Assembly (NCBI RefSeq): GCF_020745735.1
Contig: NC_083435.1
Coordinates: 28,705,231 to 28,769,230 of the forward strand
Length of the DNA: 64,000 bases
Direction: 5' to 3'
Source: Hemiscyllium ocellatum
Lineage: Eukaryota
The notes under the pieces are model-generated. The model worked only from the letters and a program-made list of their open reading frames with translations. It was not told the DNA's origin and ran no database searches. Positions 4,517 to 63,796 of this stretch are shown piece after piece (positions within the stretch are counted from its first letter, which is position 1; each line of letters opens with the position of its first letter). The translations under genes were made by a program, and so were the position numbers.

Positions 4517-5406
4517 TTATTTAATTTTAAATTTGACTATATGTTTCACCATGATCTTCAATTGTTCCCTGAACTTGGACTGAGTCACCCCATAAATAAA
4601 TGCATTTGAACAACAATTTAAACTGAGCAGCATATCTGCAACATCTGCAAAGATATGCATTGAATTATTATAATATTCAGGACTAATTCCAGTAATGACA
4701 AAATAAAAGAAATCTATAACATATAAAAGCCACAGGAGTGTGAAGCTGCCAGATATGGTGAAGAGTAGCACCATAGACTTCCTTCTATTCTCCATCTCTG
4801 TGTCACGGGAATTCTGTCCTTTGCTTTGACCCCTCAGTGCCTTCCGGACTTGACTGGTCACTAATATGTATCTGACTGTCAGAGTGTTGAACAACAGAAT
4901 TAAAGCATATGGGATTAATGGAGTTAAGACCTTAGCAAACCAGTTAAATGCCACCCATGCAGGATCAGTGAAGAAGCTTGGCTTGAAACTGCAGAACCAG
5001 GGAATATTGTCAATTATTACTCTATGTTCAATGGTGAAGTAGAAGGAAATATCTTTCAAGCAGAGAAGAATGCAGATAGTTGTCTGAACCAGCACTGCAA
5101 TTTTTCCACTACAATATTTTGTTTTCAGCTTCTGGCAACAAATGGCCACAAATCGATCAAAGGAGAAAGTGACAGTAAGCCAGACTGAACATTCTGAGGA
5201 AGCATAAATCAGGACAAAGTTAATATTACACACAGTGGTGATGTTGAGGAATGATCCTGGGAAATAATACGATTTAATTCTCCATAGTATAAATGCAGTG
5301 ATAACAACCAGTAGATCCGCTGTTGCCATGGCTATCAGATAACGAGTGGTGCAGGTGGAGAGTCCACACTTTCCTCGTGATAGATTCAAAATTGCTAATA
5401 AATTAA
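4517..5406 (-). CDS. GPR139-like: GPR139/GPR142-like class A GPCR, copy 1, coding exon 2 (TM1 C-half to TM7, stop)
   Basis: Acceptor ...ttgcctgtcttgcag|TT AAT TTA at 5407/5406 (phase 1). Open frame with LSRGKCGLS, MATADLL (D2.50), DRFVAICC, ECL2 PWFC, TM7 NAFIY; TAA at 4519-4517. Confidence 0.93.
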
Positions 5407-5567
5407 CTGCAAGACAGGCAAAAGAAACAAACTGGATATTACTGATAAATCATTATCTATGTTGACCTGGTAAGTCAGATATTTTATATGTAGAATAATA
5501 GAGTGGGAAGGGGAAAAATAAATATTGATGGAAAAGAAAATCAAACATGAATTGAATTTTTCCACAT

Positions 5568-6226
5568 TGTTATGTACTAAGCCAGACATCCTCAAAATAT
5601 TTCAAGAAGGTCGCCCAGACCCTAAATTTTCAAATTGTTTTAAGCAAGTGTAAAGTGGATATTCCAGGACTGATGCAGCTGGCCCAACCACTCAGTTTTA
5701 CATATCGCATAATGTTAGCACGTTTTGAGAAGATTTGAAATATAACATGATTTATTACGTACTCCTGAATGAAGCATGAATTAAAGAAAACCAAACTTTG
5801 AATAAACTTTGAAACTTTGAAAGCCCAAATGACTCTATTGCAATGTTTCAAATATTTGCAACATCCCCTCAAACAGCCCCTTGACAAAAAAAGTTAAAAT
5901 CAAACATAGGTTCTTACAGGAGAGAGATCAGAGAGAGAGAGAGAGAGGATCAGCATAGAGCTGTTTCTTTGGATGCCAGCAGCTCCTTTGGATTCCCAGC
6001 TAAAACTTGACCAGCAGCTGCAAACAAAACATTTTGCTAAGACTAAACCAAACCCTGAACTGGGAGAACTGGCCACTCCATTTCATTGTACAAGTGTTTA
6101 AAAAAAGAACACTGAAAAGCTTTCCCAAGTATGTATTTCCAAACATGTCAAAACCTCTGCATTTAGGACCCCTCTAAAAAAAAGGAAAGGACAACATGAC
6201 CTTTTTAAAGGAGTAGCATCATCACA
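5568..6226 (-). repeat. 3' LTR (659 bp) preceded by a polypurine tract
   Basis: Minus strand aagggggagg|TGTGATG...CATAACA; PPT at 6227-6236; related to LTR pieces at 7490-7640 and 8545-8787. Confidence 0.8.
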
Positions 6227-6399
6227 CCTCCCCCTTAAATAAAATTAACCATCAATATCCAAAGATGATTTCATTTTAAAACCACTTTATCTCATGCTGT
6301 TAGTACGTTACTGAACACTGACTCCCACCATGCAAACATGCACTATTACATTCTATTTCAGTCCATTTATTCCTGCCACCAAATGCCTCTGTTTCTCAA

Positions 6400-7440
6400 T
6401 CAAGTCTCAGCAGTGTGGCAACAATCACATTTTCTTGTCCTGCTGCACGCACAATTTTCAAATTGAATGCCTGTAACAACAAGTTCCATTAAACTGTCTG
6501 AATATTTGTCCTTAAATGTTTCAAAAAGCTTCAATGGATTATAATCAATGTATATGATTGTCTCAAATATATTACTGGAAAAATTAACATTGAAATGCTG
6601 AAATGCTAATGCCACGCTCAAAGTCTCCTTCTAAACTTTCAAATATTTCTGCTGATGAACATCCAATTTCCTGGAGAAATACTCGATAGGTTTTTTTTTC
6701 TATCTTTTCATAGTCATCCTGCAAAAGCACAGCACTGAGACCCGAATCATTTGCTTCGATAGCCACTTTCATTTGCTTTGCATAGTTTGGTGTGACTAAT
6801 ACCGGGGCAGTGGTTAACGTAGATCTCAAGTTGTCAAATGCCTTCTGACAGTTCACTGTCAATTGAAACATCTTGTCATTTTTTGAGTAATTCAGTGAGT
6901 GGAACAGATACATTGGTAAATCTTTAAGATAATTTCCAATAAAATCCACTCAATCCCAGGAATCTGGGATTCACTTTTTGCCAATGGTTTGTGGAACTCG
7001 TCAATTTATTTTGCTTTTGCATTCCATTGTCCATGTCCAATAACATGAACCAGAAAGTTTTCTTGGAGTTTGGCCAATACACTCTTAGCCAGTTTTTATC
7101 ATCAAGCCTGCCTCCCGAAGTCAATTGAACAATTCTGATAAATGTTGCAAATACTTTTTCCATGTGTGACTAAAAAGGTCACGAGGTTATCAATATAAAC
7201 TAAACAATTGGTTAATCCGGAAGTGACCTTTTTGGTTAGTCTCTGGAATGTGGCTGGTTCATTTTTCAAAACAAATGGTATGACTTTAAATTGATGTAAT
7301 CCATTTGACGTTGAGAAAACTGAAATTGACTTCACTCTTTTGGACCCTCTGAGTAAGTCCAGTTTCAAAATACAAGTTGCTTGACCCACATTTTCAACAC
7401 AGTCTTCCAAACGTGGAGTCAGGTATGCATCACTCTTTGC
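6400..7440 (-). pseudogene. Degenerate Gypsy pol (RT + RNase H)
   Basis: ORF pieces KLDLLRG, FKVIPFVLKNEPATFQR, VYIDNL (YIDD), FLGLSGFY, CQKAFDNL...APVL, AVLLQ, with frameshifts. Confidence 0.85.
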
Positions 7441-7639
7441 AACGCATTGACTTTGTGACAGCTAAACCTTGACCACTAGCAACAAACTAAACAACTTGTT
7501 ACAACTAAACCAAACCTAACCCTGAAGTCAGAGAACTAGCTATTCCCCTTTCATTGTGCAAGAGCTTAATTGCCACAGAGAGGCCAAAGAGGGGGGCAGA
7601 CAGAGAGGGAGAGAGAGGGGTGATCATCACAGAACTGCT

Positions 7640-9617
7640 TCTGTAATTGTCTAAGCATATTTATTTCTCTTTCTTAAGTACAGGAATTATTTTATCTCTC
7701 TGTTAGTCCTCTATGTTATATCTTGTGAAATATGTGAAGCATTATAACTGCTACATTTTGTCTAGATTCTTTTCATCTGTAACTTGTGAAAACTTCAGTC
7801 TTTATTTCCTCTTTTAGTTAGTTTATTTTATTCCGATATAACCTCTTTTTATTTATAATACCCTTAACTCTTTGCTAATCTTATCATTCATTAACAGGAT
7901 AATGTATCTTAAGTTCTCTGATACATTCCAAGGTCAAACAAACGATCCTTTAGATATCTGCCAGCTCTCTATCTTGACCTGTCTATCCAGCATGAAACCA
8001 ATTTCTGTTATAGTGCTACATTTGTATATCTGTTTAATAATTTTTGTTTTATAGTAATTGTTTAATAATTTGAATTCACAGATCCTCTTTTTCTAACTTG
8101 ATTAATTGATTTAAATCTCTCATTTTCCCCTTTGTATGATCTCTTCTCAGGCACTCAAGAATAATGAGCTTCATGTATCTCTTGACTAACTCTCAGTTGT
8201 CCTCCTGCATTCTAAGGACGTCCAAGAGTTTTGGATTAGCCACATGATCCACTTTCTCAGGGTCTGATCTTGGGTTGCTGCCGGAGTCATTTCCTGTTAC
8301 TCATCTCTGGGTATCTGTCTGGAATTTGTAATGAAATGAAGACACCTCTGGCTGACAGGATTCATCCTGTAGTTCAGGCAAACTCTTTTTTTTTACCTTA
8401 TTCAAATGTCATCATATTTTGGGGTGCAGTTGTTTGTCTGCCTTTTCCCCAAGCTTAAACGTTGATGTTGTGACAATGCTGTTTCTTTAACAAGGTTATG
8501 TTGTCCTTGTTTTATTTTCAGAGAGGTTGTAAGTGTAGCGGCTTCTCTGAGTTCCTAGCTAAAGATAACCAGCAGCTGAAAACAAAACATCGAGCTAAAA
8601 CCAAACCAAACCAAACCCTCATCGGGGAGAACTGATCACTCCCTTATATTGTGTAAGATTTTACAAAACAAAATTACTGAAAAACTTTCTCAAATCAATA
8701 TTTCCAGGCATATCACAATCTCTACGCTTACGACCTCTCTGAGAAAAAAGGACAACATAGCCTTGTTAAAGGAGTAGCACCGTCACAACATCAACGTTTA
8801 GAATTGGGGAAAAGGCAGACAAACAACTGCACCCCCAAATATGATGACATTTGAATAAGGTTAAAAAAAATGAGTTTGCCTGAGCTACAGGATTAATCCT
8901 GTCAGCCAGAGTTTTCTTCATTTCATTACAAATTCCAGAAAGATACCCAAGATGAGTAACAGGAAATGACTCCGGCAGCAACCCAAGATCAGACCCTGAG
9001 AAAGTGGATCATGTAGCTTATCCAAAACTCTTGGACGTCCTGGGAATGCAGTAGGACAATTGAGGGTTAGTCAAGTGAAACATGAAGATCATTATTCTAG
9101 AGTTTATTGTAAGAGATCATACAAAGGGGAAAATTAGAGATCTAAATCAATTAATCAAGTTAGAAAAATGAGGATCTGTGAATTCATATTATTAAACAAA
9201 TACTATTAAACAAACAATCTATCAACAGACATACAAATGTAGCACTACAACAGAAATAGGTTTAATGCTGGATAGACAGTTCAAGGTAGAGAGCTGGCAG
9301 ACATACTAAAGGATCGTTTGTCTGACCTTCGAAGGTAGGAGAGACCTAAAGATATGTGATTATATTAATGAATAACATGACTAGCAATGAGTTAAGGGTA
9401 TTATAAATCAAAAGAGGATATATTGGAATAAAATAAACAAACTAAATGAGGAAATAAAGACTGATTTTCACAGTTCACATTTGAAAAGAATCTAGACAAG
9501 ATGTAGCAGTTATAATGCTTCACATATTTAACAAGATATAGCATAGAGGACTAACACAGAGATAAAATAATTCCTGTACTTAAGAAAGAGGAATAAATAT
9601 GCTTAGACAATTACAGA
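7640..9617. repeat. Long inverted repeat: arms 7640-8538 and 8722-9617, spacer ~180 bp
   Basis: E.g. tctgtaattgtctaagcatattta (7640) is the reverse complement of taaatatgcttagacaattacaga (ends 9617); ORFs 8270..8458(+) and 8766..8981(-) are mirror translations. Confidence 0.93.
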
Positions 9618-10889
9618 CCACTGAGCCTAATTTTGATGATAGGAAAATAATGGAATTCATAAGGAATGAAATGAAGATTATCTAAAAATAGGAAGTATTA
9701 CAATTAATAACATGACTTTCAAAAGGGAGAGCCACCTCATCCATAGAAGCATAGAAAAGCCGCAGAAGTAGGCCATTCGGCTCTTAGAGCTTACAACGTC
9801 ATTCAATATGGTCATGACTGATCATCTGAGTATCTTGTTTGTGCTTTCTCCCCTTCCTTTTGATCACTTCACTCCTAAGAAATATAGGTAACTTCTTCAT
9901 GAAATTATTCAATGTCAGTAAAACTTCCTACTAAGTAACTGAATTAAAGACAACTTGTAGTAATTTACATACAACAATTTACTGTTGCATTTTTAAAAGG
10001 AACTTCGAATTTTCCCCACTCTAATGTAAGACTGACCAATTCCCTGTTGTCTCTCTCTCTATATTTAAAAAAAAACTAGATGGTATACATTAACCTTGAA
10101 CCTTGGTTAACATCGAATCCATCGGAACTATTCCAGAGTCAATAGAACTTTGAAAAATGCCCACCAATGCATTGAACATTTCTGTGACCACATCCTTAAT
10201 AATTCTTTGATGTATATCAACAGGATCTGGAGATTCATTGTTCTTTAATCCCATCAATTACCCTAACAACATTTCCCTACTAAAACTGACTTTCTTCATT
10301 GCGTTCTTCTCATTAGGCGCTGTGCTCCACAACATTTTTGGCAGTTTATTTGAGTATCCTTCATAAAGGCAGAATCAAAGTATGTACTTAATTGGTCTGC
10401 CATCTCTTCATAACAAATTACAACTTCTTCTACTTTTCGCTGTCAGGGGCTTCCATTTGTCATCACTTAATCTTGTTTTTGTATTCACATATCTATAGAT
10501 GTTTCTACAATTTGTATGAATGTTCCCAAAATGTTTCCTCTTGTACTATATTATCCTCCAAATTAATAAAATGATAATACCATAAGGATAGGTTTAGGAG
10601 TAGGCGGTTTAGTCCCTCAAACCTGCTCCACCATTCAATGGGATCATGGCTGATCTGGCATTCCTTATGTCCATTTTTCTATCATTTCCCGTAACTCTTA
10701 ACTCTCATACTGATAAAGGCATCTTATCTTTAAATATCCAGAAGGACTCTCCCAACACAGCATTCTGTTGCTTGACTGACCAAAACTTTTTTTGTTAAAA
10801 CAGTGACAGATATAACAAAAGATATGACTTATCTGGGTTTTTTTTTAATCATCCTTGGTATTGTGCACAAGAGTGGATGAATGAGTAAA

Positions 10890-11275
10890 ATGAGGGAATA
10901 TGGAGTCACGGGGCAAATGGCAGCTCAGGATGGAATCATTGCTTTTCACAATATACATGACTAATCAGGTACTGCATGCAAAAATTAAAGGGTGGAGGTT
11001 TAAGGTCAGAGGGATAAGTTATAAAAGGGACAACTGTATCATGCAGAGGCTGGTGCATGTATGGAATGAGCTGACAGAGGAAGTGTGGAGGCGAGTAAAA
11101 TTACAACAGCTAAAAGGCACCTGGATGGATAGTTGAATAGGAAAGTTTTACAGGAACATTGTCAAAATAATGGCAAATGGGAATAGATTAATTTAGGATA
11201 TCTGGTCAGCATGGATGAGTCGGATCCAACGGTCGGATTCTGTGCTGTACAACTGCATGTCTCTATGACTCTAAT
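10890..11275 (+). mobile_element. CR1 LINE 3' end; unit B copy ~45670-46060
   Basis: QRLVHVWNEL..EV, 3' UTR ctgtacaactgcatgtctctatgactcta. Confidence 0.7.
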
Positions 11276-12010
11276 GGTTTTGATACTGGAATCAAGAACA
11301 CAGTTTATAATTTTGCAGCTGACAAATAATTAAGGGGAAGCTAGGCAAGTATGTGAGGGAGCACAGAGTAGGTGGCCATGACAGCAGGCATGGATGAAAA
11401 ATGAAGCAAGGAGCCTTGAAAGAAGAAATAATATTCACATTGTCTGTTTGGAACAAATTTCCACTTCCGTTGCGCTGCATGTCTGATGTAATCAATATTT
11501 ACTTTGAAAGCATTATCAACAGCAAATGCTTTCTCTTTGTTGTTTATTATGTCTGAAAAGAAAGCTGGCCGTTCCAAAGAGAAAACATAAATGCAAACAA
11601 AGCAAGGAGAACAATTCCAGGAACTGACCAATTCCAATATTTACTCTTTGAATGTCTCCTCTACTAATCACTGACTCGGCTGTACATAATGTACCACGAA
11701 AGGAACCAAATTGAAGACAATAAATGAGACTGAGAGTTATGAACATGTTTATTGTCTTTCTAAGCAAATGAACAAAACTGGAAATGTAATTCAGGATGTT
11801 TAACTTTAAGAAAAGTGTCACTGATCCGGATCTGATCAGACAAAAAGCATAAATATTAATCAAGACTAAAATGACAGAATGATTCCCTATCACTGATTTA
11901 CAAATTTCAAATCTCAGAAAAAAAATCCAGAAATAGCAAAAAAGGAATAAAGAAATCCTTTTTCACTCCAGGACCTGACTCACTCTCCGAAAAACGCAAG
12001 AGATACTTAC

Positions 12011-12074
12011 CAGGAACACCAATGATAGCAAGAATTGAGTAGTATGCTTTCTTGATGCTGAAAAATGTTTCCAT
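12011..12074 (-). CDS. GPR139-like: GPR139-like GPCR copy 1, coding exon 1 (METFFSIKKAYYSILAIIGVP)
   Basis: ATG at 12074, 64 nt ending GGT GTT CCT G|gtaagt (donor 12010); joins exon 2 in frame as GVP-V-NL, giving 317 aa; intron 6604 bp. Confidence 0.88.
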
Positions 12075-13539
12075 ATTTTTCTCTGTGATGTTATCTGTCC
12101 CTTGATGCTGCTGACAATCCCTATAAATTGGACTCTGAAGCAATATATTCGCAAAACCTTCTATTTTTACACTTTCGGACCTCCATAGGGAAATTGACAT
12201 CACGGGATTGCTCAATATAGTTTTGTTAGTGACAACGAGAACCTGGAAATTATTTTAAATCACTAGAATGTCGGGTACTACTCATTTGTCAGATTGAATA
12301 AGCGAATCAAATAAACGAAACAATTTTCATTTCAAGAATTTGTTAGCTGAAATTGCAAGCTGTAATCCAGTAGCGATGGGATTAATCAGCTCTTCAGTGT
12401 GCACAAGGGGCCAGAATTTAATGAAATCGGATAACTTGGAAGGATTTGGGACTCAAGATAAGAGCAGATTGGAAGATTTGAGACACAGTTTGACCAAAAT
12501 TTGACAGAGTAGAAATTTAAAATATAACTGAGGAATGAGAGAGAGAAATATTTGGGGGAAAAGAAGTTTTATTGCTACAGGAGCAAGGTATCTGCTTGTA
12601 CTATTAATGACGTCAGTTATGGAGGAAAATGAGACATGAAATGAAAATAAAATAAATGGTTGATATGAGGGTTCAGAACAGGAGTGAGCCGATAGACCGA
12701 GCAAATTATTTTTTGATATTCAGTCACAGACTATGAACGTCACTGGCCACCCCAGTGTTTCGTATCCATTCCTCATCATCCAGAGGGCAGTTGAGAGTCA
12801 ATCACATTGCTGTGGGACCAGAGTCACATGTTGGCCAGATGGGTAACGATGGCCAAGATCCTAAATCCAAAATGGTTTTAGATTTAAAGGTCATTAGTAA
12901 ATCAGAAAGGTTTTTCCCACACTCGGAATAGACACCCAGACATATATAAGTCTATGAGGTGAATTTGAGTTTGCAGAATTATATTTGCAGATACATTCTT
13001 TTTTGCTCAAACAGTCTGCAGGCAGTCAATGCAGGCCGTCAATCCATGTAATATTTTATGAATTCCTATTTTGGAAATAGCACACGTCTGATTCAAGATT
13101 GGGATACATACAGACGGACTCTAACCTCACTGCTTTAATGCATTGTCTGAGCTGAAATGTCACCTATTTTAAAAAATATATAAAAGCTTGCTTTTTTGAG
13201 GATACGACTAAGAAGAAGTTCTGGGATTTACGTATTCATGAACTGAAAACTGAAACCCATTCCAAAAGACGAAAGACTTTACAGCAGTCTAGGTTTGTTC
13301 AATATAGCATTTCAGTTGCATGACACTGTCATCTTTTGTGATAAATTCTGCCTCTTTTGATTCTTTTTCAAAGTTACCAAATGAAAGATTTGCAGTCCAA
13401 AAGCTAGTGCTTCCAAATAAACCTGTTGGATGAAAACTTAGTGCTGTGTGATTTTTAACTATGTCCACTCCAGTCCAACATCGGCACCTCCACATCATGA
13501 ATAAAAGGGCATTGAATTACTATCAGAGATATAATAAGC

Positions 13540-13925
13540 ACTTCCTCAGTACTAACTCTCTGACAATGAAGCACTCACTTATTACTTAACTTCTGACAGT
13601 GTGGCACTCCCTCAGTAATGACTCTCTGAACTTTCAGCACTCCCTCAGCATTGACACTCTGAACCACGCCCTCAGTACTGTCCCTCTGACAATATAACAT
13701 TCCCTCAGTATTTTCGCTCTGACAGTGCTGCACTCCTTCAGTACTGACTCTCTGACAGGACAATACTATCTCAGCACTGACCTTCTGATAGTGCGGCACT
13801 CCCTCAGTATTGGCCCTCTGACAGTGCATCAATCGATAACTATTGATCTAATGGCAGTGCAGCACTCCCTCAGTTCGAACATCGGACAATACAGCAATCT
13901 ATTACTACTGCTGACACAACAGTGT
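13540..13925 (+). repeat. ~32-bp minisatellite (cactccctcagtactgactctctgacagtgcag), about 12 degenerate units; unit B copy ~48280-48640
   Basis: Directly visible periodicity of cactccctcag/ctctgacag. Confidence 0.85.
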
Positions 13926-14044
13926 TAGCATTGTCTCAACTTTGACGTTCTCATAATTCACGATTCCTCAGTGTTCTTCTTCTGTTCATGCTATACTTCC
14001 CAATGATGCCTTTGTGACAGAGTAACCCTGCCCAAGGGGTACTG

Positions 14045-25108: not shown

Positions 25109-25565
25109 CTGTGAATGGAAGGAGAGACATTGAAAATAAACTTGTGATTTCCAGAGACAGGAAGAGTCAAATGTAGAGGCAGAGTGAGAGAGAGAGTGAG
25201 AGAGAGTGAGACCTTAGTCTCTTGCCACTATCCACACTCTAGCCCTTAAATCTCTCCGTGTCACTCATCCCTCGCTCACTCCTGATCCAAGCCAAACACG
25301 CTCTTCTGATTCTAGCCCCTCACTATCATCCTGAACCTACCCTCTACCCCCACCTTGACTCTAGCTTTCTCACTTTCTCACTGTCCTTAACTCATTACTC
25401 CATCCCCATTGTTAACGACTTGCTCTTTCCTTGATCTTAGCACTGTCACTCCCAACCTGAATTGGATAGCTTCTCCATCAGGCCTCAACCTGCACAGTAG
25501 AAATTCTATGACTCTAAGGCTCTGAACTCCTGATGAGGAACTGCCACTTTCTCTCCGGTTCCTAC

Positions 25566-25686
25566 CTTTCCTGCTGTAGATGATAATGACAGCCACTGCA
25601 GTGAGAACTATGAGCAGCTGTGAGCAACCAAAGCACTCCAACTGAAATCACAATGGTGAGAGGAACCTATGCCTGAGACTCCAGAT
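25566..25686 (-). pseudogene. MHC class I connecting peptide/transmembrane exon (pseudogene)
   Basis: ctcctcttaaacag|AT CTG ... AGG AAA G|gtagga, 121 nt (one extra base); (D)LESQA*VPLTIVISVGVL/GCSQLLIVLTAVAVIIIYSRK, a hydrophobic segment with basic stop-transfer residues, placed downstream of alpha3. Confidence 0.75.
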
Positions 25687-26650: not shown

Positions 26651-26652
26651 CA

Positions 26653-26828: not shown

Positions 26829-26829
26829 T

Positions 26830-39739: not shown

Positions 39740-40626
39740 TTAAATTTTAAATTTGACTGGATGTTTCACCATGCTCTTCAATTGTTCCCTGAACTTGGAC
39801 TGAGTCACCCCATAAATAAATGCATTTGAACAACAATTTAAACTGAGCAGCATAACTGCAACATCTGCAAAGATACGCATCGAATTATTGTAATATTCAG
39901 GACTAATTCCAGTAATGACAAAATACAAGAAATCTATAACATATAAAAGCCACAGGAGTATGAAGCTGCCAGATATGGTGAAGAGTTGCACCATAGACTT
40001 CCTTCTATTCTCCATCTCTGGGTCCCGGCAATTATGTCCTTTTCTCTGATCCCTCAGTGCCTTCCGGACTTGACTGGTCACTAATATGTATCTGACTGTC
40101 AGAGTGTTGAACAACAGAATTAAAGCATACGGGACTAATGTAGTAAGGATCTTATCAAACCAGTTAAATGCCACCCATGCAGGATCAGTGAAGAAGCTTG
40201 GCTTGAATCTGCAGAACCAGGGAATATTGTCAATTATTACTCTATGTTCAATGGTGAAGTAGAAGGAAATATCTTTCAAGCAGAGAAGAATGCAGATAGT
40301 TGTCTGAACCAGCACTGCAATTTTTCCACTGCAATATTTTGTTTTCAGCTTTTGGCAACAAATGGCCACAAATCGATCAAAGGAGCAAGTGACAGTAAGC
40401 CAGACTGAACATTCTGAGGATGCATAAATCAGGACAAAGTTAATATTACACACAGGGGTGATGTCGAGGAATGATTCTGGGAAATAATAGGATTTCATTC
40501 TCCTTAGTATAAATGCAGTGATAACAACCAGTAGATCCGCAGATGCCATGGCTATCAGATAACGAGTGGTGCAGGTGGAGAGTCCACACTTTCCTCGTGA
40601 TAGAATCAAAATTGCTAATAAATTAA
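39740..40626 (-). CDS. GPR139-like: GPR139-like GPCR copy 2, coding exon 2
   Basis: Acceptor ttctag|TTAAT intact; open 7TM frame about 91% identical in protein to copy 1; stop one codon earlier (AAA>TAA). Confidence 0.9.
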
Positions 40627-40788: not shown

Positions 40789-43680
40789 TATTATGGACTA
40801 AGCCAGACATCCTCAAAATATTTCACAAAGGTAGCCCAGACCCTAACTTTTCAAATTGTTTTAAGCAGGTGTAAAGTGGATATTCCAGGACTGATGCAGC
40901 TGGCCCAACCACTCAGTTTTACATATAACATAGTGTTAGCAAGTTTTGAGAAGATTTGAAATATAACATAATTTATTAAGTACTACTGAATGAAGCATGA
41001 ATAAAAGAAAACCAAACTTTGAATAAACATTGAAACTCTGAAAGCCCAAATGACTCTATTGCAATATTTCAAATATTTGCAACATCCTCACAAACAGCCC
41101 CTTGACAAAAAAAAGTAAAATCAAACACAAGTTCTTACAGGAGAGATATCAGAGAGAGAGAGGATCAGCATAGAGCTGGTTCTTTGGGTGCCAGCAGCTT
41201 ATTTTGGTTCCCAGCTAAAACTTGACAAGCAGCTGCAAACAAAACATCTTGCTAAGACTAAATCAAACCCTGAACTGGGGGAACTGGCCATTCCATTTCA
41301 TTGTGCAGTGTTTAAAAAAGAACACTGAAAAGCTTTCCGAAGAACGTATTTCCAGACATGTCAAAACCTCTGCATTTAGGACCCCTCTGAGAAAAAGGCA
41401 AGAACAACGTAATCTTGTTAAAGGAGTAAAATCATCACAATTCCCCCTTAAATAAAATGAACTATCAATATCCAAAGATGACTTCGTTTAAAACCCCTTA
41501 ATCTCATATTGTTAGTACATTACTAAACATATATACTTCACATTGACACCCACCATGCAAACATGCACTACTACATTCTATTTCAGTCCATTTATTCCTG
41601 CCACCGAATGCCTCTGTTTCTCAACCAAGGCTCAGCAGTGTGGCAACAATCACATTTTCTTGTCCTGCTGCATGTACAATTTTCAAATTGAATGCCTGTA
41701 ACAACAAGGTCCTTTAAACATTCTGAATATTTGTCCTTAAATTATTCAAAAAGCTTTAATGGATTTTAATCAATATATATGATTGTCTCAAATATATTAC
41801 TGGAAACATTAACATTGAAATGCTGTAATGCTAATGCCAAGATCAATGTCTCCTTCTAAACTGTCAAATATTTCTGCTGATGAACATCCAATTTTCTGGA
41901 GAAATAATCGACATGTTTTCTTCTATCTTTTCATCATCATCCTGCAATAGCACAGCACTGATACCCAAATCATTTGCATCGATAGCCACTTTGAATAGCT
42001 TTGCATAGATCTCAATGACTCCTGACAGTTCACTGTCATCTGAAACTTCTTGACTTGTTTATTAGTCATTCAGTGAGTGGAACAGCTACATGGCTAAATC
42101 TTTAAAATAATTTCCAATAAAATGCACTCAATCCCAGGAATCTGGGATTCACTTTTTTGTCAATGGTTTGTGGAACTCGTCAATTTATTTTGCTTTTGCA
42201 TTCCATGGGGTCATGTGTCCATGTCCAATAATACGACCCAGAAAGTTTACTTGGAGTTTGGCCAATTCACTCTTAGCCCGTTTTTAATCATCAAGCCTGC
42301 CTCCTGATGTCAATTGAACAATTCTGATAAATGTTGCAAATACTTTTTGCATGTGCGAGTAAAAAAGTCACCAAGTTATCAATATAAAGTAAACAATTGG
42401 TTAATCCAGACGTGAACTTATTGGTTAGTTTCTTGAATGTGGCTGGTTCATTTTTCAAAACAAATAGTATGACTTTAAATTGATGGAATCCATTTGACAT
42501 CGCGAAAGCTGAAATTGACTGCACTCTTTGGAGCCTCTGAGTAAGTCCAATTTCGAAATAAATGTTGCTTGATCCACCTTTTCAACACAGTCTTCCAAAC
42601 ATGGAGTCTGGGATGCATCACTCTTTGTAACACATTGACTTTGTGACAGCTAAACCTTGACCACCAGCAACAAACTAAACAACTTGTTACAACCAAACCA
42701 AACCTAACCCTGAACTCAGAGAACTAGCTATTCCCCTTTCAATGTGCAAGAGCTTAATTGCCACAGAGAGGTCAGAGAGGGGGGCAGAAAGAGAGGGAGA
42801 GAGAGGGGTGATCATCATAGAACTGCTTCTGTAATTGTCTAAGCATATTTATTCATCTTTCTTAAGTACAGGAATTATTTTATCTCTGTGTTAGACCTCT
42901 ATGCTATATGTTGTTAAATATGTGAAGCATTATAACTGCTACATTTTGTCTAGATTCCTTTCACCTGTAACTTGTGAAAACTACAGTCTTTATTTACTCT
43001 TTTAGTTAGTTTATTTTATTCCAATATAACCTCGTTTTATCTATAATACCCTTAACTCATTGCTAGTCTTATCATTCATTGACATGATCATGTATCTTTA
43101 GTTCTCTGATACATTCCATGGGCAAACAAACGATCCTTTAGTATGTCTGCTAGCTCTCTATCTTGAACTGTCTATCCAGCATTAAACCTGTTTCTGTTAT
43201 AGTACTACTTTTGTATATCTGTTTCATAATTTTTGTTTTAGAGTAATTGTCTGATAATTTGTATTCACAGATCATCTTTTTCTAACTTGATTAATTGATT
43301 TAAATCTCTAATGTCCCCTTTGTATGATCGCTTACCATACACTCTAGAATAATGAAATTCATGCTTCTCTTGACTAACCCGCAATTGTCCTACTGCATTC
43401 TCAGGACTTCCAAACACAGAGTTTTGGATTAGCTACATGATCCACTTTCTTAGGGTCTGATCTTGAGTTGCTACCAGAGACATTTCCTTTTACTCATCTC
43501 GGGTATCGTCTGGAATTAATAATGAAATGAAGAAACCTCTGGCTGACAGGATTAGTCATGTAGCCCAGGCAAACTCATTTTTTACCTTATTCAAATGTTA
43601 ATATTGTCGTAATATTTTGGGGTGCAGTTGTTTGTCTGCCTTTTCCCCAATTCTAAACGTTGATGTTGTGATGCTGCTGC
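40789..43680 (-). mobile_element. Unit B copy of the Gypsy element (LTR 40789-41439, pol relic ~41600-42640)
   Basis: Colinear with 5568-8480; ORF FKVILFVLKNEPATF...LYIDNL at 42291-42524. Confidence 0.8.
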
Positions 43681-44389
43681 TCATTTCAGTACAAATTCCA
43701 GACAAAGATATCCGAGATGAGTAATAGGTAGTGAGTCCAGCAGCAACCCAAGATCAGATCCTTAGAAAGTGGATTAAGTGGCTAATCCAAAACTCTGTGC
43801 TTGGACGTCCTGGGGAAACAGGTGAACAATTGAGGGTTAGTCAAGAGAAACATGAAGCTCATTATTCTAGGGTGTCTGGTAAGAGATAATACAAAGGGGA
43901 AAATTAGAGATTTAGATCAATTTTTCAAGTTGGAAAAAAGAGGATCTGTGAATTCAAATTATTAAACAATTACTATAAAGCAAAAAATCTATAAACAGAC
44001 AGACAAATGTAGCACTATAACAGAAATAGGTTTAATGCTGGATAGACAGTTCAAGATAGAGAGCTGGCAGACATACTAAAAGATCGTTTGTTTGACCTTG
44101 GAATGTACGAGAGACCTAAAGATATATGATCATATTAATGAATAACAAGACCAACAATGAGATAATGTTATTATAATTAAAAAGTGGATATATTGGAAGA
44201 AAATATGCAAACTAAATGTGGAAATAAAGACTGTGGTTTTCACAACTTACAGTTGAAAAGAATCTAGACAAAATGTAGCAGTTATAATGCTTCACATACT
44301 GAACAAGATATAGCATAGAGGAATAATACACAGATAAAATAATTCCTGTACTTAAGAAAGAGGAATAAAAATGCTTAGAGAATTACAGA
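42828..44389. repeat. Unit B copy of the inverted repeat, with the centre deleted
   Basis: Same arms; the junction gatgctgctgc|tcatttcagtac at 43680/43681 removes ~440 bp (equivalent of ~8480-8918). Confidence 0.88.
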
Positions 44390-46782: not shown

Positions 46783-46831
46783 CAGAAAGAATTGTGTAGT
46801 ATGCTTTCTTGATGCTGAAAAATGCTTCCAT
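46783..46831 (-). CDS. GPR139-like: GPR139-like GPCR copy 2, coding exon 1 with 15-bp in-frame deletion (MEAFFSIKKAYYTILS)
   Basis: ATG at 46831, 49 nt ending CTT TCT G|gtaagt; AIIGVP of copy 1 is replaced by a single S; spliced product 311 aa. Confidence 0.82.
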
Positions 46832-54224: not shown

Positions 54225-55338
54225 TAGTTGAGGCGAGATCTCATGGAATACAGGGGAACTAAACATTTGGATACAGAACAGGCTCAAAGGTAGAAGACAG
54301 AGGGTGGTGATGGAGGGTCGTTTTTCAGACTGGAAATCTGTGAACAATGGAGTGCCAGAAGGAACGGTGCTGGGTTCTCGAATTTTTGTCATTTACATAA
54401 ATGATTTGGATGCGAGCACAAGAGATACAATTAGTAAGTTTGCAGATGACACCAAAATTGGAGGTGTAGTGGACAGTGAAGAGGGTTGCCTCAGATTACA
54501 ACAGGATCTGGACCAGATGGGCCAATGGACTGAGAAGTGGCAGATGGAGGTTAATTCAGATATATGCAAGGTGCTGCATTTTGGGAGAGCAAATCTTAGC
54601 AGGACTTATACACTTAATGATAATGTACAAGGGAATGTTGCTGAACAAAGAGACCTTGGAGTGCAGGTTCGTAACTCCTTGAAAGTGGAGTCGCAGGTAG
54701 ATAGGATAGTGAAGAAGGCGTTTGGTATGCTTTTCTTTATTGGTCAGTGCATTGAGTACAGGAGTTGGGAGGTCAAGTTGCGGCTGTACAGGACATTGTT
54801 GGAATATTGCGTGCAGTTCTGGTCTCCTTGCTATCGGAAAGATGTTGTGAAACTTGAAAGGGTTCAGAAAAGATTTGGAAGGATGTTGCCAGGGTAGGTG
54901 GATCTGAGCTATAGGGAGAGGCTGAACAGGATTGGACTGTTTTTCCTGGAGCATCAGGAGGCTGAGGGAGGACCTTATAAATGTTTACAAAATTATGAGG
55001 GGTATGGATAGGGTAAATCCGCAAAGTCATTTCCCTGGGGTCAGGGAATCCAGAACTAGAGGGCATAGGTTTAGGGTAAGAGGGGGAAGATATAAAAGAG
55101 ACCAAAGGGGTAACTTTTTCCTCCAGAAGGTGGTGCGTATGTGGAATGAGGTTCCAGAGAAAGTGGCAACATTAATTGCAACATTTAAGAAGCATTTGGA
55201 TGGATATATGAATAGGAAGGGTTTGGAGGGATATGGGCCAGGTGCTGGCAGGTGGGACTAGATTGGGTTGGGATATCTGGTTGGCATGGATGTGTTGGAC
55301 CAAAGGGTCTGTTTCCGTGCTGTACATCTCTATGACTC
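54225..55338 (+). mobile_element. CR1/HER1 LINE RT + 3' UTR, unit B copy (197-aa open stretch 54304-54897)
   Basis: FVIYINDLD...ISKFADDTKIGG...LQQDLD...EYCVQFWSP; 5'-truncated, premature stop. Confidence 0.9.
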
Positions 55339-58300
55339 TAAACTCACACTTGATAATCATTTTAACTGCCTTTGAGGTCGCTGTCAATTAGATCTTCCAA
55401 TTCTTGTGAAAGGGAAAAGTTAAAATGAATCATGTCCTGAGTGATATTTGTATTCCTGTTTGTTTGGGGGCAATGCAGGAGAGTTAATTTGATGCAAAAC
55501 GATCGCTTTGGCCTTCATTGACCAAAAGTATCGTTGTCCCTGATGATTCTGAAAACTACCCGAAGGTCAAAAAGTAAAGAACTTTCGCAGAATATTGAAG
55601 CCAAGTGTGAACCATGTCGCCTGAAATATGTAAAAAAAATTCTTAAATTTAGACTTGAATTGCATTGTCATGTGTACTCAAGTACAGAAGTGCAGGAGTG
55701 CAGTGAAAAGTAGGCAATGTTGTCTCGCAGGGCACCATCTTAAGTACAAATGTACCTCTGTCCAAAAAAAAATTCAGGTGCAAAATAGTCAAAGAAACAA
55801 AGTTAAAAATTTAATCATTACCTTCATTGAATAAGTCGGAAAATAAAACAAAGGTCAGAGTCAAATTAAAGTCCTTCTTAATATAAACGAGAAAAATAAA
55901 AGAATAAAGTTCAAAGTTCAACAGTGTTTGATGAGTCTCCATTTTTCTCATTCTCCGGGAGAATTCAGTTGCCAGTTCTTAACCAAACCACCGCAGATAC
56001 TGGGGGAGGTCCCTCACAGCTCGCTCTTCCCGCTTTGGGCAGCAATGTCATTCCTGCTGCTGCTGCTGCTGCTGAAGCTGTCACCTCCCTGATCTCTTCC
56101 TCCAATTTCCCGAACATGTCAAGGTACTGTCAGAACCGGCTGAAAACCAGGCTGAGACACTGCCGTGGGCCACCGAGGGATTGGCTCGAGACATCATCAG
56201 GCAGCTCAGCAGAAGCTCAGAGGCTCAGATAGGTGGTAGATTAAAGTGTCAAGATTTGCTTCCAAAACAAATCAGCTCTTACTCATATTAGAATCTTCTG
56301 TTCGCTGTTTCTTAACAACAATATCTTTTGGAAACAAATAAATTCTGTAAGAAGTTGCTTATCTATGCAAAAATGAATTTGGAAAATTCAATGTGTTATT
56401 CTATTCAAACTGACGGACAATGTGCATAGAAGTCTAAACGTTTGTAGAATTGCAACTTTAAGCATTACAATTACAAAGTTAACATAAACTAATTTTTCCA
56501 ATTAGTCATTTAAACAAATTAAAACACACCAGTGCAAGGATATAATATTAGTTATGATTTCTTGACAAGGGCTAGTAAGCAAGGATTGCATCAACACTGC
56601 TTTTGTAACCTTGGAAGTATGGAAATAAGCTGCACAATCGTAGCGTCCCTGTCTCTAGGCTAGGAGGTATAGATAGAAGCCCCACCTGTGCAGAAAATGT
56701 CTCATAATTGGTCCAAGCAGTTTGGTTAAAACGAAATCTCGAAATCTTAGAGTCATTGTAGTAACATCTTTGATTAAAAGGCTTAGTGGTACAGTGGCAG
56801 TTTCACTGTGTCGAAGCCAGAACTATTGGTTCAAGTCAAACCTGATTCAGAGGTGTGCTATAACAGAGCTCAGCAGGTTGGTTACGGAATATCTATAGGC
56901 CTAACAGGGCCTGCTTGACCTTGCATCTGTAACTGTAAACTTTTCTGCCACTGTCTTCATTCTATTCTCTATCCCAACGTGTATTTTGATGTCAACTGAA
57001 GCTGAGGTGAATCAACTAATATAAAGTTGTCAAGACTTGCATTGGCTGCTGTTAAGTAGAACAACACATTAGAGTCGACAAAAACCATGCCTTGATTGTG
57101 CAATGAAAGGTAAAATAAATTTATCATCAAATGACAGTTTCCCGACCAATCCAAATCACTCTTCAGCTGATCTTGGGAAAGATGGCCTTGGTTTCCCAGC
57201 CGCAACTCTGGAGGGCACTGAGGGAAAAATGGGACAGATGATTATAGAGTGAGCAAAATCCAATTCATCCAAAATAATCCCCATAAGCCCCAATGATTTG
57301 CGTCAAAGAAATCCATCAAATCCTCAAACCCCAGCAATGAAACTGATCAGATACCTAAACCGATGTATAAACATTAAAATTCAAAAGACTTGTATACAGT
57401 TAAACACACAGAACATAAAACAATACAGCATAGAAACAGGTCCTAGCTTGTCTTTGTTGCTTAGGGCATTGAGGAGAAAAGTCATGTTGCAGCTGTACAG
57501 AGCTTTAGGTAGACCACATTTGATGTATTGCGTGCATGCTAGTCACCACACTGCAGGATGGAAGTTGTGGCTTTTCAAGGTGCAAAACAGATTTACCAGG
57601 ATGTGGCCTGAATTGGACTGTATTAGCTTTATGGAGAGATTGCACAAACTTGGAGAGATGGAGGCTGAGTATGACCTGATATAAGTATATTAAATTTGAA
57701 AAACATAAATAGGATAGATCATCAGAGTCTTTTTCACAAGATGGAAATATCAAATATTAGAATACATAACATTAAGGTGAAAGAGGGGGTAAGTTAAAGG
57801 GAGGAGATGGGTGAGGCAAGTCCTTTACACAGATGTAAGTATGTGCCTGGAAGTCAATGCCAGGGAAAGTAGTAGAAGCAAAAACCATAGTAATGTTTAA
57901 AAGGCATTAGACACACACGAACAGATCAGGAGTAGAGGGCTACAGGCCATGTTCAGACAGATGAAATTAGTTCGGAATGCCATTATGGTTGGCGCAGATA
58001 CGTTAGCTCTTACGGACCCAGAATTATGGGGAGAAAGTGTGAACAAGGTACTCAATTAATGATCAGCTATAGTCATATTGAATAGGAAAATAAATCTTCT
58101 TTGAACCTGCCTCAACCACACTTTCAGACAGTGCAGAACAAGTCAAGTTTGTATTCCCTTAGAAAATTAAAGGGGTGATTTGATGGAAGTTTAAAACATT
58201 AAAGAGAAAAGGATGTTAAATGATAATCGATGTTAAATCATAGTCATAAATTCATGGGAACACTGAAAACAGGAGCTGAACTAGGCCACTCAGCCCTTCG

Positions 58301-59712
58301 AGCCTGCTCACTCATTCAGCATGATCATGGCTGATCATCTTTCAGAAAGTCAACTTTGGAAGCATAGGCACATCCTCAGTCAAATGGAGAGGCAGAAAGT
58401 CAATGCAACACAACAAACCTAACTGGGAATTAACTCCACTCAGTTATAGAACAACACTGTCGATTAATGGGCACTCATCAGCGGAATTGTTCAAGGGGAT
58501 GCCCTTGAAGGTGGATGCACTAGTTTTAGAACATGACCTCAGGCCACATATAAACTCTGAAATCTGTGAGAAGGTAAAGCAACTAGAGAAAATGTCTCAA
58601 CATAAAAGCAGTAAAGGTACAGCAACTCTGGACAGAGTGAAAAACATCAAACTTAAATGCAAGGTAGAAAGCCTGGTTAAAATATAACAACCAACTGCAG
58701 AGTCTGGCCATGCTGAAAAAAAATTGCCCTTACCGCGGATCAATTGCATTAAAATTCCTTGTTATTATCAGTTCTGAAGAAAGGTCACTGGACACAAAAT
58801 ATCAATTCAACTTTTCCTCTGCGGTTTTCCAGCAATGTTTGCTTTTGTTGCAGGAAGTTTGATTTATGGATAGGAAGTCAAACAGCTCGGTCATCAGAGA
58901 AACAAATCATCAGAAGTTTAACCTTGTCAGAAGACCTGAGGGCATATTCAGGACGGACAGGAAGGGATTGGTCTGACGTGAGACTAGCAGCATGTCCAAG
59001 AATGATTGTCAGAGGAGGAAGACGAATACCCATACAGTGTCACACAGAGTGAATCAGCCATTTCAGACGGTACAACATCATCAGCTTCGAGTTGAAATCA
59101 AGCAAACACGATCATTTCGTCTAGTCAGAGTTTCTGATTGGTGCAACCTGAGAGAATTGGCTGTAGTGGCATCAAGACAATATTTTCATTTATATAAGCA
59201 AATTCAATGTCAGCAAGCAAAAAGAAACTCCCAGAATAGTGCAGACCAGGTAGAGAGAAACTTGGGGCGAGATCTCAAAAAATAATCTTAAAGCGCATGG
59301 GAGATTTATACAAGTGATGATGGTTAAATGATGATGTGACTAACATCAGTGAAAGGGGAGATACGGGACTGTTGTGAATATGAAAGATAGAGACAGGGCT
59401 TAGTTCTGTGTGTTAACTTGAAGACTTTAGATGCAAATACAATCATGTCAAAATGCATAGGATCTGGATGATTTGCTTAAAGGGACCAGCAAACAATTTG
59501 ATGCTCAGTGTATGTGCAAATACCCACAGCACAAATCCCCAGACCAGTACCTTAATGCCTAAGTACCAATCTGGCTTAACAGATAAGCTACAGTATATTG
59601 AGGGCAAGACAGACACGATGCTCAGATTCCACCCACCAGACTGTAATGTTAACACCAACTGTCCAACCAAAGTTAATTGGAGTTCCCCTTTTTGAATGAC
59701 ACCACACGTACA

Positions 59713-59740
59713 TCAGACACTGGCAATAGAAATGTTTGAG
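59713..59740 (-). pseudogene. Remnant of the MHC class I last exon in unit B (TM exon and tail acceptor deleted)
   Basis: Matches 25062-25089; sequence then jumps to the equivalent of 25723. Confidence 0.6.
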
Positions 59741-62335
59741 AATGGAGAGAAATAAGGTGAGAGAAAGGAAAAGAGAAATAGAATTAATGTGAAATTTCAT
59801 AAATTGTGCTGTAATAGGTCATTCAGCCCAACCTGTCCATGCTTGTCTTGACTGAATTATCGCATTTAATGTACAGATGGAGGCCAGTTGAACCATCACG
59901 TCTGTACCAGTTAATTCTCCTACCAGGTTCTTCTTCAATATTTCCTAGTCTTCACCTATTATCATTGCAATGCATTCCTCCCTCCCTCATATTTGTCAAG
60001 CGCATTTCTAGCGTTCAGTCCAACCACTCCACCGTGAGTGAGTTCCACATCCTCACCATTGTTTGTTTTAAGAGGTGTATTCCAAGTTCCCTATTAGATT
60101 TCTACAAATGAGAAACGCTCTCTTGCAATCCATGTTACAAAGATTTCCATCATGATAAAGATGACCAAGGGGGTCACCTTTCTGTTTTCCAGGGAAATTG
60201 GGAGCCAGCCTGTCAATCCATTCTTGGTAGATATTGACATGTTATCCTGGCACACCCTCTCTAGTACAGGATCCTAACTGGGACCTCTGCTGTTTGTGAT
60301 ATATATAAATGACTTGAATGAAAATATGAATGGGTGCATTAGTAAATTTTCAGATGGCACAACGATCGGTCGATATGTGGATAGAGGAGAAATTGTCAAA
60401 GGATACAGTGGTATATAGGAAAGTTGCAGATATGACCGGACAAATAGCAGAAGGAGTAAGTGTGAGGATCTACACTTTGGGAGATCAGATGTTAAGGAAA
60501 AGTACACAGTTGATGGCAGAACCCTGAACAGCATTGATGTACAGAGGGATCTTGGAGTTCAAGTCCATAGCTCCACAAAAGTGGTCATATAACAAGCTAA
60601 GTTAGTAAAGAAAGCATATGACATGCTTTGTTTTACTGGTCAGGTAATTAAAATCAAGAGTCAGGATGTCATGGTGGCTCAGTGTTTAGAACTGCTGGCT
60701 CACAGTGCCCGGGACCCGGGTTTGATTCTAGCCTCGGGTGACTATCTGTGTGGAATTTGCACATTCTGCCTGTTTGTAACTAATCTCGATGCTGTCTTGT
60801 TTAATATCTCGTACCACAATCTCCGCCCCTAAAATATTCTCCTTTTCCTGAGTGAAAACCGATGAGAAATGTCAGTTTAGCACCTCTCCGATTTCCATAG
60901 GGCCCACACTCAACTTCCCACTTCTGTTTTTGACTGGCCCTATTCCTACCTTTATCATCTTTTTATTCCTCACATACATATAGAAAGCTTCGCGCTCTCC
61001 TTTATTCTATTTGCAGAAGACTGCTCTTGTCGTGTCTTTGCTCTTCTTAACTCTCTCTTTAGATTCTTTCTAGCTGATCTGTAACTCTCCATCGCCTCAT
61101 CTGAACCATCTTGCATCATCAACACATAAGCTGCCTTCTGCTGAACAAGAGATGCAATTTCTGTAGTTAACCACGATTCCCTTACCTTACGATTTCCTCC
61201 CTGCCTGACAGGGACATGTGTACCAAGGACACACAATATCTATTCGTTAAACCAGCTCCACATTTCCATTGTCTGCATGCCCTGCATTTTGATACCCCAT
61301 TCTATGCATCCTAATTCTTGCCCAATTGCATTATATTTACCCATGCCCCATCGATAACTCTTGACCTGTGGCATGTACCTTACCCTTTCCATCGCAAAAC
61401 TATATGTAACTGTATTATGGACACTCTCTCCAAAGTGCTCAACCTACAACTAAATCAAAATCCTGGCCTTGTTCTTCACCAAGCTCCAGATCCAGTGTGG
61501 CTTCCCGTTTTGTCGGTTCTTCGACATACTGTGTCAGGAAACCTTCCTGCACACATTGGATAAAAACTGATCCATCTGACGTACGAGATTTATAGCATTT
61601 CCAGCCAATGTTGGGGAAATTAAAATCCCCCACAATGACCACCCCGTTCCTTTCAATCTTACCCATCCTAATTCTGCCAATCCTCTCTTCCAGCTCCCTG
61701 GAACGCTGCAGAGGCCTATAAAAAACTCCAAGCAGCGTGACCTCTCCTCTCCTGTTTCAAACCTCAGCCCACACTTCCTCAGTACAGGAGTCCTTGTCAA
61801 AAGTTCTCTCAGCCACCATTATACTATCCTTGACTAACAAGGCCACACGTCACCCTCTTTTTCCACCTTTCCTGTTCTTAATGAAAAATATCAATCTGGA
61901 ATCTGTGACATCCATTCCTCACCCTACTCTATCCTTGCCTCCGAAATAGACACAACATCGAAGTCTCAAGTACCTGTCCATGCTGCAAGGTCACCAACCT
62001 TATTTTGCATACCTCTAGAGTTGAAGTAGACACACTTTAAATCAGTTTGTCTAGGGAAATTTTGGGCAATAAATTCAACCTAAACAGCAACACCCGTATC
62101 ATATGAACGACTTTAAAAAAAAATGTCCTCATATGGTTATATTCCAGAATACACTGGGCATTGTCCTCTCGTAGAACCTCAGGGTATGCTCTCACTTTTC
62201 ATATTATAACATGAAGATTTTGTTGCAATGTAATATCACAGGTCTTGTTGCACTCTGAAAATTTGAGGATATGTAAGATGTCTATAAACTCCATTTCACC
62301 ATCCCGGGACATTTTGTACATATGGCCATACTGTA

Positions 62336-63796
62336 ATGCTCGAGGATACAAAAGTCCTGTCATACTGCAATCCATACTGTGGTCCTCATTGTACTCTAAC
62401 ATCCCAAGATAGAGCTCTCCGCTTCTTCCTGTCCCGCCGCACCAACCAGAACCCATCCACTGACACCCTCCTTCGACTGACTGAACTGGTCCTCACCCAG
62501 AATAACTGCTCTTTTCAATCCTCCCACTTACTCCAAACTAAAGTAGTTGCCATGGGCACCCGCATGGGCCCCAGCTATGCCTGTCTCTTCGTAGGATATG
62601 TGGAACAGTCCATCTTCCGCAACTACACTGGCACCACCCCCCACCTTTTCCTCCGCTACATCGATGACTGTATCGGCGCTGCCTCGTGCTCCCACGAGGA
62701 GGTTGAACAGTTCATCAACTTTACTAACACCTTCCATCCTGACCTCAAATTCACCTGGACTGTCTCTGATTCCTCCCTCCCCTTCCTAGACCTTTCCATT
62801 TCTATCTCAAGTGACCGACTCAACACAGACATCTACTATAAACCGACTGACTCCCACAGCTATCTGGACTACACCTCCTCCCACCCTGCCCCCTGTAAAA
62901 ACTCCATCCCATATTCCCAATTCCTTCGTCTCCGTCGCATCTGCTCCCAGGAGGACCAGTTCCAACACCGCACAGCCCAGATGGCCTCCTTCTTCAAAGA
63001 CCGCAGATTCCCCCCAAACGTGATCGACGATGCCCTCCATCGCATCTCCTCCACTTCCCGGTCCTCCGCCCTTGAGCCCCGCCCATCCAACTGCCACCAA
63101 GACAGAACCCCACTGGTTTTCACCTACCACCCCACCAACCTCCGTATACAGCGTATCATCCGCAGTCATTTCCGCCACCTCCAAACGGACCCCACCACCA
63201 GGGATATATTTCCCTCCCCTCCCCTATCAGCGTTCCGCAAAGACCACTCCCTTCGTGACTCCCTCGTCAGGTCCACACCCCCCACCAACCCAACCTCCAC
63301 TCCCGGAAACTTCCCCTGCAACCGCAGGAAATGTAAAACTAGCGCCCACACCTCCACACTCACTTCCCTCCAAGGCCCCAAGGGATCCTTCCATATCCGC
63401 CACAAGTTCACCTGTACCTCCACACACATCATCTATTGCATCCGCTGCACCCGATGTGGCCTCGTCTACATTGGGGAGACGGGCTGCTTACTTGCGGAAC
63501 GCTTCAGAGAACACCTCAGGGACGCCCGGACCAACCAACACAACCACCCCGTGGCTCAACACTTTAACTCTCCCTCCCACTCCACCGAGGACATGCAGGT
63601 CCTTGGACTCCTCCACCGGCAAAACATAACAACACGACGGTTGGAGGAAGAGCACCTCATCTTCCGCCTGGCAACCCTCCAACCACTAGGGATGAACTCA
63701 GATTTCTCCAGTTTCCTCATTTCCCCTCCCCCCACCTTATCTCAGTCAGTTCCCTCAACTCAGCACCGCCCTCCTAAACTGCAATCTTCTTCCTAA
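62336..63796 (+). CDS. Penelope RT (C-terminal part) + GIY-YIG endonuclease, open frame 486 aa; first ~25 aa are host flank
   Basis: MGTRMGPSYACLFVG, LRYIDD, PFLDL, YYKPTD, IIYCIRC..C..VYIGETG, ERFREH, VAQHF, RLEE. Lacks the N-terminal RT motifs. Confidence 0.85.
   Translation: MLEDTKVLSYCNPYCGPHCTLTSQDRALRFFLSRRTNQNPSTDTLLRLTELVLTQNNCSFQSSHLLQTKVVAMGTRMGPSYACLFVGYVEQSIFRNYTGTTPHLFLRYIDDCIGAASCSHEEVEQFINFTNTFHPDLKFTWTVSDSSLPFLDLSISISSDRLNTDIYYKPTDSHSYLDYTSSHPAPCKNSIPYSQFLRLRRICSQEDQFQHRTAQMASFFKDRRFPPNVIDDALHRISSTSRSSALEPRPSNCHQDRTPLVFTYHPTNLRIQRIIRSHFRHLQTDPTTRDIFPSPPLSAFRKDHSLRDSLVRSTPPTNPTSTPGNFPCNRRKCKTSAHTSTLTSLQGPKGSFHIRHKFTCTSTHIIYCIRCTRCGLVYIGETGCLLAERFREHLRDARTNQHNHPVAQHFNSPSHSTEDMQVLGLLHRQNITTRRLEEEHLIFRLATLQPLGMNSDFSSFLISPPPTLSQSVPSTQHRPPKLQSSS

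Follow-up and report, generated by a model that had tools for sequence, protein, structure and literature searches.

Headless class I pseudogene fragments carried in a tandem array of receptor genes on the MHC chromosome of Hemiscyllium ocellatum

On the chromosome of the Hemiscyllium ocellatum assembly that carries the major histocompatibility complex (MHC; C113 below), genes for a G protein-coupled receptor (GPCR) of class A and sequence derived from an MHC class I gene are repeated together in tandem. We analysed a window of 64,000 nucleotides from this region (C113:28705231-28769230) and the surrounding 294 kb of C113. Self-BLAST of the window revealed a direct repeat with a period of 34.2-35.7 kb: the stretch 1-29489 aligns collinearly to 34561-62411, and identity ranges over 89-97%. 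This bears out the original prediction made for this sequence, which had proposed a tandem co-duplication of class I sequence and a GPR139-like receptor on the minus strand with a period of ~34.5 kb; the two units that share the window, A and B, each hold one receptor gene and class I sequence, both on the minus strand. The prediction had also suspected a larger array, and self-comparison of the 294 kb indeed showed that four head-to-tail units (U1, A, B and U4), not two, span 28.668-28.798 Mb, and that a fifth, older copy (U0) lies dispersed outside them (Table 1). The units differ from one another by 4-11% and by many insertions and deletions (indels), transposable element (TE) insertions and larger deletions, and given differences of 4-11% they are paralogues and not assembly duplicates. 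Their divergence is graded, B and U4 being the youngest pair with an intron divergence of 4.3% versus 7.6-9.2% for the others. Synonymous divergence amounts to 0.03-0.09 among the units, 0.06 between zebra and whale shark, and 0.29-0.37 between the units and either shark.

All four tandem units contain a complete two-exon receptor gene. Using the N-terminus of the zebra shark orthologue, we located coding exon 1 at 5.7-6.6 kb upstream of exon 2 in U1, A, B and U4, and at 6.2-6.6 kb in A and B alone, with an ATG and a G/GTAAGT donor, while the acceptor of exon 2 consists of a polypyrimidine tract followed by CAG or TAG. When spliced, the genes encode 317 amino acids in U1, A and U4 and 311 in B, in each case with an ATG and a GT-AG intron. 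A 7tm_1 domain and a complete spliced open reading frame identify the products as class A (rhodopsin-like) GPCRs; hydropathy analysis resolved seven segments in U4 and, at the chosen threshold, fewer separate peaks in A, B and U1, the peak of the first transmembrane segment (TM1) being lower in B. The original prediction had let the receptor reading frames end at stops upstream of TM1, which suggested 5'-truncated pseudogenes; this was ruled out, since the stops are intronic, exon 1 lies further upstream and the splice sites are canonical. A genome search placed the close receptor copies, of 88-94% protein identity, at 28601902, 28675919, 28709750, 28744973 and 28780625. Intact members outside the window had been considered possible, and for the receptor they exist, complete in U1 and U4, but for the class I sequence of this array there are none. 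As a separate observation, intron 1 of the receptor harbours an inverted repeat of ~900 bp in both A (7640-9617) and B (42828-44389), with arms that are 85-89% identical and a spacer of ~180 bp.

The class I copies are headless pseudogene fragments made up of alpha2, alpha3 and possibly a transmembrane exon, and have no coding capacity. Minus-strand alpha2 exons are confined to U1, A and B, where the PF00129 matches (28700835, 28736337 and 28770550) cover alpha2 only. Searching the 294 kb with PF00129, and by tblastn (E<=0.1) with a set of 14 class I proteins from sharks and fish, we found no minus-strand alpha1, an apparent extension into alpha1 in U1 being alignment noise. Thus, of what a functional class I heavy chain should have, the copies retain the alpha2 domain match and lack the leader and alpha1, an open alpha2 and an open alpha3. 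The alpha2 exons of A and B have in common an in-frame TGA and a tyrosine at Cys164, by which the Cys101-Cys164 pair is lost, and in U1 the 5' portion of the exon is missing; the alpha3 sequences of U1 and A have in common a 1-bp insertion and a Trp-to-stop change, and in B most of alpha3 is deleted. Because these lesions are common to the units, the class I gene must have been dead before it was amplified, and the proposal that the amplified unit contains one class I heavy chain has to be abandoned. Neither did the class I remnant B that had been placed inside the window prove to be one, since 59741-62411 holds only a homologue of the intron and long interspersed nuclear element (LINE) region of copy A; the alpha3 remnant and the alpha2 exon of B (PF00129, 51.9 bits) lie beyond the window end, at window-equivalent positions 64356-65580. 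The candidate transmembrane exon of fragment A, at 25390-25647, was not significant (Table 1). The alpha2-alpha3 intron of fragment A is filled by a C/T-rich low-complexity tract (30257-31072) with strong negative GC skew, and on the plus strand this tract produces spurious open frames of great length in which Ser, Thr, Pro and Leu abound.

How the fragments came to lack their 5' end is apparent from the junctions between the units. The A/B junction lies between window positions 31484 and 31485, ~115 bp upstream of alpha2 and thus in the alpha1-alpha2 intron, and homology to the 3' flank of the receptor, for which U0 and the low end of U1 serve as references, begins at 31485. The A/B and B/U4 junctions are identical and align at 95.5% straight across. 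At the U1/A junction we considered a separate original breakpoint inside the U1 alpha2 exon and rejected it, as this junction is the common one plus a later 268-bp deletion that clips alpha2. With the common junction in the alpha1-alpha2 intron, the unit can never have held a leader or alpha1. A high-copy repeat straddles the junction and could plausibly have served as the substrate for the first duplication or rearrangement. In four runs of three other samples there are contigs that show 0-2 differences from the unit A alpha2 fragment; they reach 19-30 nt past the junction and end there because the high-copy repeat covers 31424-31591.

Table 1. Units of the array and features within the window. 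Plain positions refer to the window; positions in Mb refer to C113.
Feature	Position	Strand	Description
Unit U1	28.668-28.701 Mb		Low end of the array
Unit A	1-31484 (part in window); ends 28.7367 Mb	-	Starts ~4.2 kb before the window; collinear with 34561-62411; junction with B mapped
Unit B	31485-64000 (part in window); ends 28.7709 Mb	-	End near window-equivalent 65700
Unit U4	ends 28.7978 Mb		Receptor present, class I sequence absent
U0	28.586-28.609 Mb		Dispersed older copy; fifth copy, outside the tandem array
Receptor A exon 2	4517-5406	-	End of TM1 to stop codon, intact; open frame 4517-5389, 7tm_1 E 1.6e-21; acceptor polypyrimidine tract + CAG, phase 1
Receptor A intron 1	5407-12010	-	6604 nt, GT-AG
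Receptor A coding exon 1	12011-12074	-	64 nt; ATG, N-terminus, first half of TM1; donor G/GTAAGT; tblastn with N-terminus of zebra shark orthologue E 1e-20
Possible class I transmembrane exon, fragment A	25390-25647	-	Hydrophobic stretch, then basic anchor; BLASTP to shark class I protein E 0.27; present in U1, deleted in B
Decayed LINE inside class I fragment A	26900-29000	-	Exo_endo_phos_2 E 1.4e-4; reverse transcriptase-like frames
Class I alpha3 exon, fragment A	29815-30302	-	Broken: 1-bp insertion, Trp-to-stop, 61-bp insertion; aligned with intact alpha3 of plus-strand gene; tblastn
Class I alpha2 exon, fragment A	31068-31364	-	In-frame TGA, Cys164 to Tyr; PF00129 35.1 bits (open reading frame piece), 52.8 bits (genome scan)
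High-copy repeat straddling the junction	31424-31591	.	Word depth 1100-6700 versus 10-20 nearby, four runs
Receptor B exon 2	39740-40626	-	Frame intact; open frame 39740-40609, 7tm_1 E 9e-20
Receptor B coding exon 1	46783-46831	-	15-bp in-frame deletion, TM1 shorter by five residues
Former 'remnant B'	59741-62411	-	Homologous to copy A's class I intron and LINE region; within the window it lacks any class I coding exon
Penelope-like retroelement open frame in class I fragment B	62336-63796	+	Reverse transcriptase and GIY-YIG, 486-aa open frame; GIY-YIG E 1e-4, RVT_1 E 0.006; homology to unit A ends at 62411

Taken together, head-to-tail units, a single junction, graded divergence and the presence of both intact and dead members characterize a tandem array, which we think is probably a lineage-specific segmental duplication in a birth-and-death MHC region, where the unit that has been kept is the two-exon orphan receptor. 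As the class I fragments are dead and U4 has none, the fragment is a passenger. In zebra shark and whale shark we found one orthologous receptor each, at 82% identity, the next match being at ~65%, and no class I exon was found upstream of the receptor at either locus; with a single orthologue and no upstream class I in these sharks, the amplification is specific to the lineage, and so is the class I fragment upstream of the receptor. We infer that the process started from an already inactivated class I gene, which shared the strand of the receptor and stood upstream of it. The initial duplication would then have had one breakpoint in the alpha1-alpha2 intron of this pseudogene and the other in the 3' flank of the receptor, at or next to the high-copy repeat, and unequal crossing-over between the units would subsequently have spread the single junction to give four units. 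As to where the class I sequence came from, the alpha2 of the fragments shares 52-59% identity with the exons of a class I cluster at 26.5-26.8 Mb and 45% with the adjacent plus-strand class I gene described below, so that an inverted copy of the latter is not supported. Among 1.84 billion representative proteins searched by phmmer, the best matches to the alpha2 exon were shark class I proteins of <=50% identity that bear automatic names only.

Receptor exon 2 has diverged between units by 2.3-5.6% without a single frameshifting indel, and intron 1 by 4.3-9.2% with 2.8-6.7 indel events per kb, so that the exon has changed at about half the rate of the intron. The ratio of nonsynonymous to synonymous divergence (dN/dS) takes values of 0.24-0.39 in comparisons with the orthologues of zebra and whale shark, and of 0.36-0.87 when the array copies are compared with each other; at the sequence level, we interpret this as a moderate constraint over the long term, with young paralogues relaxed or diversifying. 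On this basis the array genes are probably functional, expressed orphan receptors.

Several observations weigh against the favoured reading. Compared with each other, the array copies have a high dN/dS; TM1 of receptor B is five residues short through a deletion; receptor A has a Val-to-Asp replacement in predicted TM7, where the dead U0 also has Asp and the other copies Val, and this could be a change in the binding pocket or early decay; thus, some of the array receptors may be decaying. The RNA runs on record were searched for the receptor sequence and none contains it. In addition, the history outlined above would lead one to expect that the array begins, on its upstream side, with the original class I gene of the minus strand in full length, and it is absent, as U4 ends before it; an extra deletion is therefore needed, and none could be documented. 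Finally, none of the class I exons sampled from the genome exceeds 59% identity to the fragment alpha2, and a tree of so short an exon did not resolve. The first of these points would also suit the view that the whole array is neutral junk and its receptors are pseudogenes that have not yet been disabled, as would the TM1 deletion in B, the result of the RNA search and the death of the dispersed U0, whose receptor has a TAG in exon 2 and lost exon 1 to a ~5 kb deletion. Nevertheless, we consider this view unlikely, since the ATG and both splice sites survive in all four array copies, as does an open frame of ~950 nt, no frameshift has occurred despite the density of indels in intron 1, the exon changes at half the intron rate, and dN/dS against the orthologues is low.

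The receptor belongs to a large family. From 12,509 first-look candidates, a larger number that is unverified, 135 matches were scored, and all 135 had E<1e-106 and 57-94% identity, so that the family has at least 135 copies; these scored matches occupy at least 15 contigs, and 48 of the 135 are on C113, mostly at 26-35 Mb. All 83 PF00129 matches of the genome also lie on C113, in agreement with a report that places every elasmobranch class I gene in the MHC (PMC10751288) and whose text makes no mention of these receptors. A published sawfish MHC table lists, without comment, ten GPR139-like genes between class Ib groups. Receptors and class I genes stand together on C113, a receptor adjoins class I in zebra and whale shark, and the sawfish table has the same pattern. 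The linkage of this receptor block to the elasmobranch class Ib region is old and unstudied, and the large two-exon orphan class A receptor family in sharks appears undescribed in the literature that we searched, in which we found nothing on a shark GPR139-like expansion. A scan of the whole genome with PF00969 gave no match either here or in control genomes and is thus uninformative on class II linkage. As for the name given to the receptor in the original prediction, GPR139 is indeed the top PDB match (7VUG; 39.5 bits, E 3.8e-9), but CXCR4 (34.2 bits) and GPR15 (32.1 bits) follow closely, and judged in this way 'GPR139-like' is only a label from automatic annotation.

From this setting a more far-reaching proposal could be drawn, namely that the GPR139-like block among class Ib genes is an ancient feature of the elasmobranch MHC, predating the shark-ray split, that constitutes a functional sensory or immune repertoire and a counterpart of the MHC-linked olfactory receptor and V2R clusters; the convergent receptor/class Ib pair would then be its regulatory core and the array a recent expansion. 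We hold this proposal in full to be quite improbable.

It might further be supposed that class I and receptor form a functional cassette, amplified together because the two work together, by analogy with mouse H2-Mv/V2R. Class I sequence and receptor were copied together in three units, the sawfish table intersperses such receptor genes with class Ib groups, and in both zebra and whale shark, at loci collinear with U0, an annotated class I gene lies ~9 kb downstream of the orthologous receptor in convergent orientation. The positional orthologue of these class I neighbours in H. ocellatum is a plus-strand gene with open alpha1, alpha2 and alpha3 (C113:28574978-28586264), which adjoins the dead U0 receptor, likewise convergently. 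Thus the class I-receptor synteny for which other sharks were to be inspected exists as adjacency, but it involves a different class I gene on the other side of the receptor, in convergent orientation. The amplified class I copies, in turn, have no leader or alpha1, carry common stops and frameshifts and include no intact partner; in U4 the receptor stands without any class I sequence; and the receptor that does stand beside the conserved class I gene in H. ocellatum is the one without exon 1 and with the TAG. With nine receptor exon-2 copies within the 294 kb, receptor density is such that chance alone puts a receptor tens of kb or less from a class I gene in the region. The closest receptor relatives in basking shark and horn shark have no class I neighbour within 10 kb. 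We therefore regard a functional cassette as very improbable: what resembles one arises routinely through unequal crossing-over and is not evidence of co-function between class I and receptor. Least credible of all is an assembly artefact by duplicated haplotigs or a mis-joined repeat, for although a high-copy repeat stands exactly at the junction and short contigs break there, the 4-11% differences, indels and TE insertions between units go far beyond allelic variation, divergence is graded with B and U4 closest, the contigs of three samples match copy A and pass the junction, and the 294 kb contain no run of N.

The segmental duplication of a retained receptor with a passenger class I fragment, which remains our preferred reading, has a practical consequence for annotation: in this region, an 'orphan' class I alpha2 exon is debris left by duplication, and counts of class Ib genes should omit it. 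What deserves to be recorded is the large receptor family and the fact that it has long been linked to the class Ib region of elasmobranchs.

Some further features of the surroundings were noted. A higher-order duplication of ~40 kb, in which 28612428-28652413 pairs with 28801877-28839230 at 87-94% identity, flanks U0 and U4, and each of its copies carries a more distant receptor paralogue with 58% identity to receptor A. On the low flank of U1, at C113:28659493-28664268, there is a plus-strand, 5'-truncated duplicate of the plus-strand class I gene, consisting of alpha3 and a transmembrane-like exon only, which represents a second kind of class I debris at the locus. In the plus-strand class I gene itself, alpha1 and alpha2 are separated by a 9-kb intron, which contains, at C113:28576251-28577860, a 94%-identical copy of the Penelope-like element that is inserted in class I fragment B. 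In the distant cluster, several class I genes at C113:26514471-26666130 have alpha1 and alpha2 in one open frame of 243-258 amino acids, which suggests that these genes of the 26.5-26.7 Mb cluster have a very short in-frame alpha1-alpha2 intron, or none.

Among known systems, the locus most resembles the birth-and-death arrays of MHC class I and chemoreceptor genes, with which it shares head-to-tail units, one junction, graded divergence, intact and dead members, dense retroelements and a location on the MHC chromosome; it differs from them in that the surviving gene is the receptor, whereas the class I gene was truncated by the breakpoint and already dead. Physical linkage of class I genes to a large family of receptors is likewise found in mammals, in the olfactory receptor cluster of the MHC and in the association of H2-Mv class Ib with V2R genes in the mouse; however, the shark receptors are not members of the olfactory receptor or V2R families, and the class I copies amplified with them cannot encode a protein. 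With the elasmobranch class Ib clusters (UBA, UDA, UEA and UFA; PMC10751288) the locus has in common that all class I sequence resides on one chromosome. Human GPR139 (PDB 7VUG) is, like the shark receptor, a class A seven-transmembrane receptor, but the shark family has hundreds of copies, is devoid of a CWxP-type motif in TM6 and has N-A-F-I-Y in place of NPxxY.

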